NCBI RefSeq assembly: GCF_001194135.2
Contig: NC_068990.1
Span: forward strand, 93,542,364-93,584,264
DNA: 41,901 bases
Source: Octopus bimaculoides
Lineage: Eukaryota
Direction: 5' to 3'
The position numbers and the translations under genes are program-made. Below are positions 1-2,117 of this stretch, one piece after another. Below the pieces are notes generated by a model. The model had not been told where the DNA came from. It was given only the letters and a program-made list of their open reading frames with translations, and ran no database searches. Position 1 is the stretch's first letter. Each line of letters begins with the position of its first letter.

Positions 1-2117
1 TAGAATGAAGATGAATCATTGATGATCTAACATGGGATTCTGTGGCTCTTTCTGAGGAAGTGGTAACTTTAGTAGGAAATTTTGATCTTAAATTAGGTTC
101 AGTATCAGAACTAGATTTCAGCTCTTCTCTGGAACCAGAACCAGACTTCAAGTCATCCTCAGACTCAGTACTTGATTCCAGGTCATCCTCTGAATCAGTG
201 CTAGATTCCAGGTCATCCCTTGAATCAGAGCTAGATTCCTGGTCCTCTTCAGTGCCAGAGCTTGATTCTAGATCGTTCCCAGAGGGAGAGCTAGACTCTG
301 TATCATCTTCAGTGCTAGAGCTAGATTCTTCTATATCATCAAATTCCAAATGTGATGGTGAACTAGTTGTTTCAACAGAAACAGATTTACTGTTGATATA
401 AACACTCGGTGTGTTAATATAATTACGAATGACTGAAGAATAATGAGTAGCACTATTAATTGATTGCTGTAATCTAGAACTAGCAATGTGGTAACTATTT
501 GAAACTGGGGTAGGTTTGGGTATTTTAGGTGGTATTGTTGATGTGATGTCACTGTTTATAACAGATGTAGGGTGTGGAATTGTAACAGAAAGGAATTTAT
601 ATGTTGCAGAAGATTTTATAGAATGAGAATTTGATATTGAAGGTATTTTGCTTTCATGAAGATTTCCATAACTAGAACTAGAACCAGACTTATGCCGTGA
701 AATATAACCAGAATGAAGATGAATCATTGATGATCTAACATGGGATTCTGTGGCTCTTTCTGAGGAAGTGGTAACTTTAGTAGGAAATTTTGATCTTAAA
801 TTAGGTTCAGTGTCAGAACTTGGTTTCAGCTCTTCTCTGGAACCAGAACCAGACTTCAAGTCATCCTCAGACTCAGTACTTGATTCCAGGTTATCCTCTG
901 AATCAGTGCTAGATTCCAGGTCATCCCTTGAATCAGAGCTAGATTCCTGGTCCTCTTCAGTGTCAGAGCTTAATTCTAGATCATTCCCAGAGGAAGAACT
1001 AGGGTCGAAATCTTTTTCAGAAATTCTGGATGTGACTTCCCTGTTTATAACAGATGCAGGATGTGGAGTTGTAAGAGAAAAGAATTTACGTGTTGTGGGA
1101 GATTTTGTTGATTGAGAAGTTGATATTGAAGGTATTTTGGTTTCTGGATAATTTAAAGACATTGAACTGGAAGCAAGGTATGAGACGGAACTGGATTGAG
1201 TGTGAAATCCGGGAGCTGAAGATAAGCCAGAGTAGTCTTTATTTACTGAGCTAGAGTGAAGATGATCTTTGGAAACTGAGATGGATTGAATAGAATTTGC
1301 AGAGGTTGAACCAGACTCAAGATTATCTCCAGATGTTGAACCAGAATCAAGATTATCTCCAGATGTTGAACCAGATTCAAGATCATCTACAGAGGATGAA
1401 CTAGAGTCAGGATCATCTTCAGAATCTGAATTTGAGTCAAGATTATCTCTAGAACCTGATCTAGAATCAAAGGCATTCTGAGTGGATGTGGTTGAATCTA
1501 AAGGGGTGTGAGTGGTTAATATTGAGTGTAGATAATTTTGAAATGGTGATGTAGAATTTAAGTAGTTGTGAAAAGGTAAAGTAGATTCTTGATAATTTGC
1601 TGGTGTTAAAGTTGTGTGTTTATAATTAGGAATGGTTGAAATGGTATCTGTATGATTGTGATGTTTAGAATTAGAATCTGTGGTACCCGTAGAAACTAAT
1701 TTAATTTTTGTTGATTTCATTGGTTCACCAAGAACTGAAGAATTTTGCTCTTTTTCATGACCATTTATGACATCTGAAGTAGACTCTCCTTTTATACTAT
1801 CAAATCTCTCAAATTCTTTTTCTACATATATATCACTATTTGATGATGGAAGTTTAACGGCAGGCATATATTCATCTTCTGCATCTTCTGAGGTCCCAAA
1901 CTCATTAGGACTGTTACCAAGCTGCTTTGAAGTCTCCACTTCATTATCCTCCAATCCAATAAATGTACATGTAAAGCCAGAGGGATCTAAACACTCTGCT
2001 GAGCCATGCTCATCATAATTGTCCCCTGAACTATGAAGCCACTCACCAGATATGTTGTAAGGAACATCAGTTTTGTTGTATGTCAGTTGGGGTTCACAAA
2101 GTTCAGGGTTGCCACGC
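1..2117 (-). CDS. HHIPL: HHIP-like last visible exon: RGNPELC junction plus at least 705-codon Ser/Thr/Asp/Glu-rich repetitive tail, open to window edge
   Basis: Acceptor ttttcttctcttcacag at 2118-2119. I checked every triplet from 2116 to 2 and found no stop. The start (R)RGNPELC aligns with RRAPPGKC after the HHIPL1 propeller. Probably missed by the ORF track because no stop lies in the window. Confidence 0.9.

Follow-up and report, generated by a model that had tools for sequence, protein, structure and literature searches.

In HHIP itself the propeller is followed by two EGF repeats and a C-terminal membrane anchor, and in vertebrate HHIPL1 by an SRCR domain. Among secreted proteins of another kind, the acidic matrix phosphoproteins (dentin phosphophoryn/DSPP, Starmaker/OMM-64 and the molluscan Aspein/MSP-1) are disordered, polyanionic and Ser-rich, carry short acidic repeats, and are lineage-restricted and fast-evolving. 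The involvement of invertebrate HHIPL proteins in Hedgehog signalling is unconfirmed, and Hedgehog binding has not been shown for any of them (PMC9695228). The subject of this report is an HHIP-like gene of Octopus in which an HHIP-type head may be joined in frame to an acidic, Ser-rich repeat tail of some 4,000 amino acids (aa). The gene lies on the minus strand of a 41,901-nucleotide (nt) stretch of the Octopus bimaculoides genome (chromosome CM046610.1; NC_068990.1, positions 93,542,364 to 93,584,264), the whole of which is referred to below as the window.

An earlier note on this stretch, made from the letters alone, had drawn attention to a hidden, giant tail behind an HHIP-type propeller. 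The best explanation for what is found at the locus, and one that we consider probable, is that read-through yields a long isoform of some 4,660 aa, at best an alternative product of the gene. Positions 1 to 2117 of the window would then be the first sixth of a single giant terminal exon. Exons 1 to 7 encode a secreted head: behind the signal peptide come a Cys-rich domain resembling Folate_rec and a GSDH/HHIP-type propeller of six blades. Use of an internal donor, 71 nt into exon 8, would let the mRNA end in a tiny distal exon and yield a canonical short HHIPL protein of about 600 aa; when that donor is skipped, the same frame would continue for about 12.3 kilobases (kb), which in O. vulgaris amounts to 4,089 codons. 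The resulting protein, secreted and free of a membrane anchor, would be an HHIP-type head set on a very long acidic and probably heavily modified scaffold.

The tail exon and its acceptor

On the minus strand of the window, a polypyrimidine tract and an AG dinucleotide (2119-2118) stand directly ahead of an exon that begins at 2117, and the frame read from 2116 is free of stop codons for 705 codons, as far as window position 1. The other two minus-strand frames contain 103 and 29 stops and the plus-strand frames 36-68 each; given the base composition, 705 codons in a row would lack a stop by chance with a probability of about 1.9e-20. The long open exon that the earlier note had placed right after the junction RGNPELC is borne out by these signals, and both its quoted decamers and its five sequons (NKT, NIS, NSS, NHT, NST) were all found in the translation.

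The frame in which the tail is entered can be read from exon 7. In O. vulgaris this exon is 82 nt long and ends in AG, which together with the G at window 2117 forms an Arg codon (…DPFR/RGNPELC), giving the frame of the long open reading frame (ORF). In the annotated O. sinensis and O. vulgaris transcripts, exon 7 (…IYKLVDPFR) is joined to this very acceptor, in the long-ORF frame; these HHIPL1 transcripts are the only ones known to use it. The earlier note needs correcting on the propeller exon ahead of the tail, which in the O. bimaculoides assembly is cut by a gap of Ns (2665-2892), so that its last 47 nt and its donor are covered and 35 of the 82 nt are visible.

The HHIP-like head

A tblastn search with HHIP-like proteins, refined by examining the splice sites, located seven upstream exons, all on the strand of the tail exon (Table 1). 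Pfam recognises in their product a Folate_rec domain (PF03024, E 5.6e-13, residues 31-172) and a GSDH domain (PF07995, E 3.7e-33, residues 201-503), preceded by a hydrophobic N-terminal signal peptide (KD19 1.56) that is the sole strongly hydrophobic stretch of the long product. Residues 176-554 match the human HHIP structures 3HO3, 7PGM and 2WFX at E of about 1e-56 (best E 7e-57, for 3HO3 and 7PGM), and the head also matches 7PGK, the HHIP N-terminal domain, at E 4e-4. The post-propeller DP.RR…C junction is conserved between octopus and both P0090, the spliced HHIPL transcript of another invertebrate (…KIVDPRRRGDPNKC), and HHIPL1 (…MIDPSRRAPPGKC).

The reconstruction of exons 1-6 followed by 11 out-of-frame codons (window 2083-2117) matches the RefSeq protein XP_052827341.1, "HHIP-like protein 1" (556 aa), exactly. 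That model ends in a frame-shift artefact because the gap truncates exon 7 and exon 6 is joined to the acceptor at 2117 instead. A direct join of exon 6 to exon 8 was rejected as biology, being out of frame with a stop after 11 codons. The exon-1 ORF read on into intron 1 (window 39291-40283, minus strand, 331 aa) is also found as a separate UniRef entry (P0129), which survives from the first annotation of O. bimaculoides. An exact look-up of the exon-1 ORF product gave no match.

Table 1. Features of the HHIP-like gene in the window (positions 1 to 41,901; exons numbered in the direction of transcription)
Feature	Position	Strand	Remarks
Exon 1	39330..40283	-	ATG, signal peptide, Folate_rec-like Cys-rich domain, start of GSDH propeller
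Exon 2	15518..15603	-	
Exon 3	10737..10915	-	
Exon 4	9302..9445	-	
Exon 5	8309..8438	-	
Exon 6 (RLFYLYQ…SFGEDQN-G)	6117..6259	-	
Exon 7, visible 5' part, 35/82 nt	2893..2927	-	Last propeller blade strand; whole exon read in O. vulgaris
Assembly gap, 228 N	2665..2892	.	Conceals the remaining 47 nt of exon 7 and the donor
3' splice site AG of exon 8	2118..2119	-	Polypyrimidine tract ahead; interspecies identity step exactly here
Exon 8, short form, 71 nt	2047..2117	-	Form used in O. sinensis and O. vulgaris by the annotated HHIPL1 isoforms of 598-601 aa (C-termini of P0126-P0128)
Internal 5' splice site GT, TCTG/GTGAGTGG	2045..2046	-	Use would give the short isoform; skipping would lead into the tail
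Exon 8, long (putative read-through) form	1..2117	-	First 705 codons; RGNPELC… then Ser/Thr/Asp/Glu-rich repeat tail; continues past window position 1
Acidic decamer array 1	1300..1453	-	30-nt period, 5.1 copies
Acidic decamer array 2	860..952	-	30-nt period
Acidic decamer array 3	99..328	-	Part of second copy of higher-order module

The tail beyond the window and in other Octopus species

The first 2,664 bases of the window are 100% identical to part of an O. bimaculoides locus (L003), through which the tail can be followed past window position 1: a gap of 3,278 N, 1.7 kb of tail, a second gap of 1,244 N, and 2.3 kb of tail ending in a stop codon. The frame is uninterrupted within each of the three sequenced blocks (705, 556 and 756 codons), so that the O. 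bimaculoides tail comprises at least 2,018 sequenced codons plus the two gaps, and it has the same C-terminus as in its congeners. RefSeq calls three genes here, namely the 556-aa HHIPL1, a 1,082-aa protein begun at an internal Met (window 1867; L003 1067-7772) and a 465-aa protein (P0122, XP_052827340.1; L003 10001-11398). The last, which goes by the name "clumping factor A-like [Octopus bimaculoides]", corresponds to the C-terminus of the tail itself. The split of the tail in this annotation is explained by the assembly gaps.

The locus of O. vulgaris (L005, in OX597823.1 at about 34.50-34.53 Mb) is free of gaps and shows the tail whole. A run of 4,102 stop-free codons (76704-89009), 13 of them before the acceptor and 4,089 after it, ends in …DMYDYQDFENIPQR and a stop codon; the tail itself occupies L005 76743-89009. 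In O. sinensis (L004, CM016867.1) the frame is open for 2,387 codons, meets a few breaks at 83072-83458, and then runs for another 1,028 codons to the same C-terminus. No gene is called on the tail ORF in either species, and in both it lies inside the annotated last intron of HHIPL1. The tail that the earlier note had called giant is thus giant indeed once extended to its stop in O. vulgaris. It had also been called hidden, and so it is, with no gene call in the two congeners and only "clumping factor A-like" fragments in O. bimaculoides RefSeq.

The orthologues of the short form fall in one cluster at 90% identity (CAI9728909.1 of O. vulgaris; XP_029641154.1, 601 aa, and XP_036361757.1, 598 aa, of O. 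sinensis). These isoforms end in …NIS/GILQM (601 aa) or in VI, each followed by a stop, and the last residues come from a tiny distal exon. The GILQM exon lies about 6.4 kb past the tail stop codon (L004 93002, L005 95445). Together the tiny terminal exons lie 6-15 kb past that stop, the VI exon at about L004 101466. The VI exon is within the range of a convergent PDI/thioredoxin-like gene (L004 98168-111473), and the GILQM exon falls about 5 kb short of it. No counterpart of the tiny terminal exon was found in the O. bimaculoides sequence at hand.

Repeats and composition of the tail

Over its 705 codons in the window, the tail contains 23.8% Ser, 9.2% Thr and 16.6% Asp+Glu, with an isoelectric point (pI) of 4.6. 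Tandem Repeats Finder places three 30-nt (10-aa) tandem arrays within it (Table 1), and a higher-order repeat is evident from the 96.9% identity of positions 2-294 to 710-1002. The complete O. vulgaris tail of 4,089 aa is of the same character (26.7% Ser, 9.1% Thr, 5.2% Pro, 15% Asp+Glu, pI 4.76, net charge -284, five Cys). It is a low-complexity region organised in about 15 modules spaced some 150-160 aa apart, each with a semi-hydrophobic "YKFLSVT.PHP.SVIN" box, an acidic decamer array and a basic or His-containing linker, and it closes with a unique, conserved C-terminus. Nothing in it resembles a transmembrane segment (maximum KD19 0.7), and LPXTG, RGD and furin motifs are absent.

Repeat copies are 95-97% identical within a species and about 84-87% identical between species, a pattern that indicates concerted evolution or turnover of the units. 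The repeat units of O. vulgaris differ among themselves by 15-35% at the nucleotide level.

Modification motifs

The earlier note had read the tail as a candidate proteoglycan or secretory phosphoprotein, on the strength of Ser-Gly sites near acidic residues as the context for glycosaminoglycan (GAG) attachment, the FAM20C kinase motif S-x-E, and N-glycosylation sequons. Motif counts were compared with those in shuffled sequences of the same composition, and any enrichment among them comes from repeat copies that are not independent of one another. The Ser-Gly part of the proposal finds weak support in the SG context, as SG is enriched both in the window (19 vs 7.1 expected, z 5.3) and in the O. 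vulgaris tail (109 vs 42, z 13), and some sites adjoin acidic residues; canonical SGxG sites are few, with 2 in the window and 6 (vs 1.6 expected) in the 4,089 aa of the O. vulgaris tail. The FAM20C context did not hold up. S-x-E is not enriched in the window (10 vs 14.5 expected) and is depleted in the full O. vulgaris tail (48 vs 75.9, z -3.9), while S-x-[DE] stands at expectation. Nor did the sequons, which though present are strongly depleted (N-x-S/T, 5 vs 12 in the window and 21 vs 69, z -7, in O. vulgaris).

That the tail is the core of a GAG-bearing proteoglycan, or a FAM20C-type secreted phosphoprotein such as those of biomineral and cartilage matrices, seems to us rather unlikely. 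A tail that is 27% Ser with a net charge of -284 would suit such a protein, as would the surplus of SG and SGxG sites and of CK2-type [ST]xx[DE] motifs (46 vs 38.8 in the window, z 1.6; 288 vs 219 in O. vulgaris, z 5.8). The shortage of S-x-E and the rarity of canonical SGxG speak against it, and homology and Pfam searches found no similarity to a known proteoglycan, SIBLING/SCPP or mollusc shell-matrix protein.

The depletion of sequons in the O. vulgaris tail occurs despite 36% Ser+Thr and 5% Asn, and might reflect selection against N-glycosylation or just the structure of the repeat unit.

Coding constraint and entry into the tail frame

Constraint was assessed by comparing O. bimaculoides with O. 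vulgaris. The alignment of the tail starts exactly at the acceptor, and over its first 1,089 nt the exon shows 94.2% identity without a single gap, whereas identity drops to 85.6%, with 6 gap openings, in the adjacent intron and the other introns are 83-86% identical with many indels (roughly one gap opening per 60-160 nt of intron). Differences at the start of the tail are distributed 23/8/33 by codon position. The ratio of nonsynonymous to synonymous substitution (dN/dS) is 0.22 in the head, 0.40 in tail codons 1-330 (p 0.003) and as low as 0.16 in codons 24-84, just past the internal donor; it is 0.51 over the C-terminal 455 codons and 0.27 over the last 160. These comparisons support a tail that is coding and under selection.

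There is no shared start codon near the beginning of this constrained frame. Where RefSeq starts its 1,082-aa O. bimaculoides protein with a Met (codon 84, window 1867), both O. sinensis and O. vulgaris have Val; O. sinensis has Arg in place of Met133, and the earliest Met common to all three species lies at about codon 318. Because the frame is open and constrained for about 300 codons before any conserved Met, and opens only 13 codons upstream of the acceptor, it must be reached by splicing.

The same observations bear on whether the tail might be a separate gene, or several, nested on the same strand in the last HHIPL1 intron, with HHIPL1 itself only about 600 aa long. This is how RefSeq models O. 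bimaculoides, with its gene calls in L003 (the 1,082-aa protein and XP_052827340.1), and the annotated HHIPL1 isoforms of the congeners do bypass the tail; a possible variant has an alternative first exon in intron 7 that splices into the same acceptor. We regard such an arrangement as improbable. The start codon of the nested model is not kept in the congeners, in all three species the roughly 300 codons preceding the first shared Met stay open and behave as coding sequence (no indels, the codon-position pattern given above, dN/dS 0.16-0.4), the proposed start (MPAVKLPSS…) lacks a signal peptide, the division into genes in O. bimaculoides follows from the assembly gaps, and neither O. sinensis nor O. 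vulgaris has a gene call at that place.

It is very unlikely that the tail is untranslated, a young stop-free satellite in an intron or retained intron whose open frame is a by-product of recent repeat amplification: the near-identity of copies within a species with dN/dS of about 1 between them, the turnover of units between species and the want of any homologue or domain in our searches would fit, but the non-repetitive first 360 or so and last 455 or so codons are open as well, with dN/dS of 0.27-0.5 and significant Fisher tests, the diverged units of O. vulgaris preserve 4,089 codons without a stop, most of their single-gap alignments differ in length by multiples of 3, and the unique region escaped the indels that mark the introns.

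Several observations weigh against the read-through isoform itself. Both annotated O. sinensis HHIPL1 transcripts (X1 and X2) and that of O. vulgaris leave the ORF after 23 codons, at the donor TCTG/GTGAGT, and so bypass the tail. This internal donor (window 2046-2045) is a near-perfect match to consensus, and the same donor context is found at the exon-8 internal site in O. sinensis and O. vulgaris. The earlier note's claim that the propeller is joined to the tail is accordingly borne out as far as the acceptor at 2118 and the long frame, both used by annotated transcripts, and is opposed by the exit of those same transcripts 23 codons later. In O. bimaculoides the RefSeq annotation models the tail as separate genes. 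The O. sinensis frame is broken where the O. vulgaris ORF is intact; the breaks are probably assembly indels in the repeat, though they may be a real lineage-specific disruption. Between repeat copies within one species, dN/dS is about 0.76-1.2, which would leave individual repeat residues hardly constrained; within the window, the ratio between copies is uninformative because the copies are recent or homogenised. Finally, a function of the tail as a secreted polyanionic scaffold tethered to an HHIP-type head is suggested by its composition alone.

Homologues and distribution

A word-indexed homology search with the whole tail and with its non-repetitive first 216 aa (E up to 10) returned no matches, and phmmer against 1.84 billion representatives returned three weak ones, of which only P0122, from O. 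bimaculoides itself, is meaningful, while P0121 and P0123 are unrelated repeat proteins; since the databases searched appear not to list the proteins encoded in the window, the missing congeneric matches are uninformative. Pfam found no domain in the tail or in pieces of the O. vulgaris tail. Literature searches on HHIP-like proteins in molluscs, octopus or biomineral matrices, and on "clumping factor A-like" proteins in octopus, yielded nothing relevant beyond the general statement on invertebrate HHIPL proteins cited above.

The fully spliced invertebrate HHIPL transcript introduced above (P0090, locus L002) shares 54% identity with the octopus head and ends 8 residues beyond the Cys of RRGDPNKC. 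As it ends so soon past the conserved Cys, the tail is not a general feature of invertebrate HHIPL proteins. In a cephalopod-grade relative (P0001, P0002) the head is 62-65% identical to that of octopus (62-64% for P0002), and for P0002, on a 242-kb contig (ERZ21867824), no further exons were found in the 10-kb downstream flank. With no detectable homologue outside Octopus and a P0090 transcript that lacks it, the tail is apparently restricted to the genus, in agreement with the lineage-specific origin that the earlier note had suggested.

Other sequences in the introns

The introns of the window hold several further ORFs. Those at 3433-3705, 4634-4852, 6695-7150, 13342-13534, 37380-37800 and elsewhere encode recurring short peptides (…TRPEILG / TRPQIWGKG…), which suggests many copies of one interspersed repeat resembling a short interspersed nuclear element. 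Intron 1 also contains long ORFs at 28424-29275 (plus strand, 284 aa) and 30415-31339 (minus strand; 117, 73 and 102 aa) that look like decayed coding sequence of transposable elements. Pfam gave no match for four other ORFs of the window, these long ones included.

Implications of a proposed read-through isoform

In the two best Octopus assemblies, a conserved coding sequence of 12 kb (4,089 codons) stands unannotated in the "last intron" of HHIPL1; with a corrected annotation the predicted product would grow from some 600 aa to some 4,660 aa. The locus would be a clear case of a giant repeat exon, restricted to one lineage, that has been added in frame to an ancient ectodomain related to signalling, with one internal donor acting as the gate.

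Judged from the sequence, read-through mRNA and protein presumably exist; the tail may be modified by O-glycans, phosphate or GAG and act as an extracellular spacer or a cation-binding matrix. A role of the tail in cartilage, mucus or cation binding, as the earlier note had envisaged, is a guess. A more ambitious proposal, which we put forward tentatively and with more doubt than conviction, is that donor-skipping turns an ancient, short and secreted HHIP-like propeller protein into a switchable giant, whose genus-restricted polyanionic scaffold of about 4,000 aa would represent an unrecognised class of proteins of the extracellular matrix, of mucus or of mineral. On this proposal the long protein could tether or sequester the ligands of the propeller, perhaps glycans or lipid-modified ligands of the Hedgehog type, within a strongly charged gel. 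Should the long isoform be made, it would be a candidate for a major polyanionic component of matrix or mucus in octopus tissues, and it would place the invertebrate HHIP-like proteins, which are poorly understood, in a new domain context. Otherwise, a frame of 4,000 codons under purifying selection and without a conserved start needs another explanation.

Comparison with known systems

The octopus head shares with vertebrate HHIP, HHIPL1 and HHIPL2 a signal peptide, a Folate_rec-like domain and a six-bladed GSDH propeller. It keeps the post-propeller DP.RR….C motif of the family and is named HHIP-like protein 1 by RefSeq. What follows is different, for in place of the vertebrate arrangements octopus has, as an optional extension, some 4,000 aa of acidic repeats that have no Pfam match. 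Pfam finds no EGF domain in the tail and there is no C-terminal hydrophobic anchor, unlike HHIP proper; no SRCR domain was found by Pfam in the head, the tail start or the tail end, unlike vertebrate HHIPL1.

In its architecture the tail recalls mucins, gel-forming and tethered, and other proteins with giant repeat exons in central or terminal position, in which fast-turnover, Ser/Thr-rich tandem modules likewise accompany a folded, secreted, Cys-containing domain. The octopus version lies in one exon of 12.3 kb, and its repeat copies are homogenised within a species. Unlike mucins, it combines 36% Ser+Thr with only 5.2% Pro and with 15% Asp+Glu, and is without vWD, CysD, SEA or CK domains.

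Like the acidic matrix phosphoproteins, the tail is polyanionic and Ser-rich with short acidic tandem repeats, is lineage-restricted and fast-evolving, and is predicted to be secreted and disordered. There is no sequence similarity, Asp is far below its level in phosphophoryn or Aspein, and S-x-E is depleted. None of dentin phosphophoryn/DSPP, Starmaker/OMM-64 or Aspein/MSP-1 is known to carry an HHIP-type propeller.

With staphylococcal clumping factor A the tail shares only its Ser- and Asp-rich composition. Unlike clumping factor A and the Sdr proteins, the O. vulgaris tail is depleted in SD (57 vs 87 expected) and contains SDSD once, and it has neither an LPXTG motif nor, by Pfam, a fibrinogen-binding A domain; the RefSeq label "clumping factor A-like" is an artefact of composition. 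Set against these systems, the head is a member of a known family, and the giant, optional acidic tail is a new variant.

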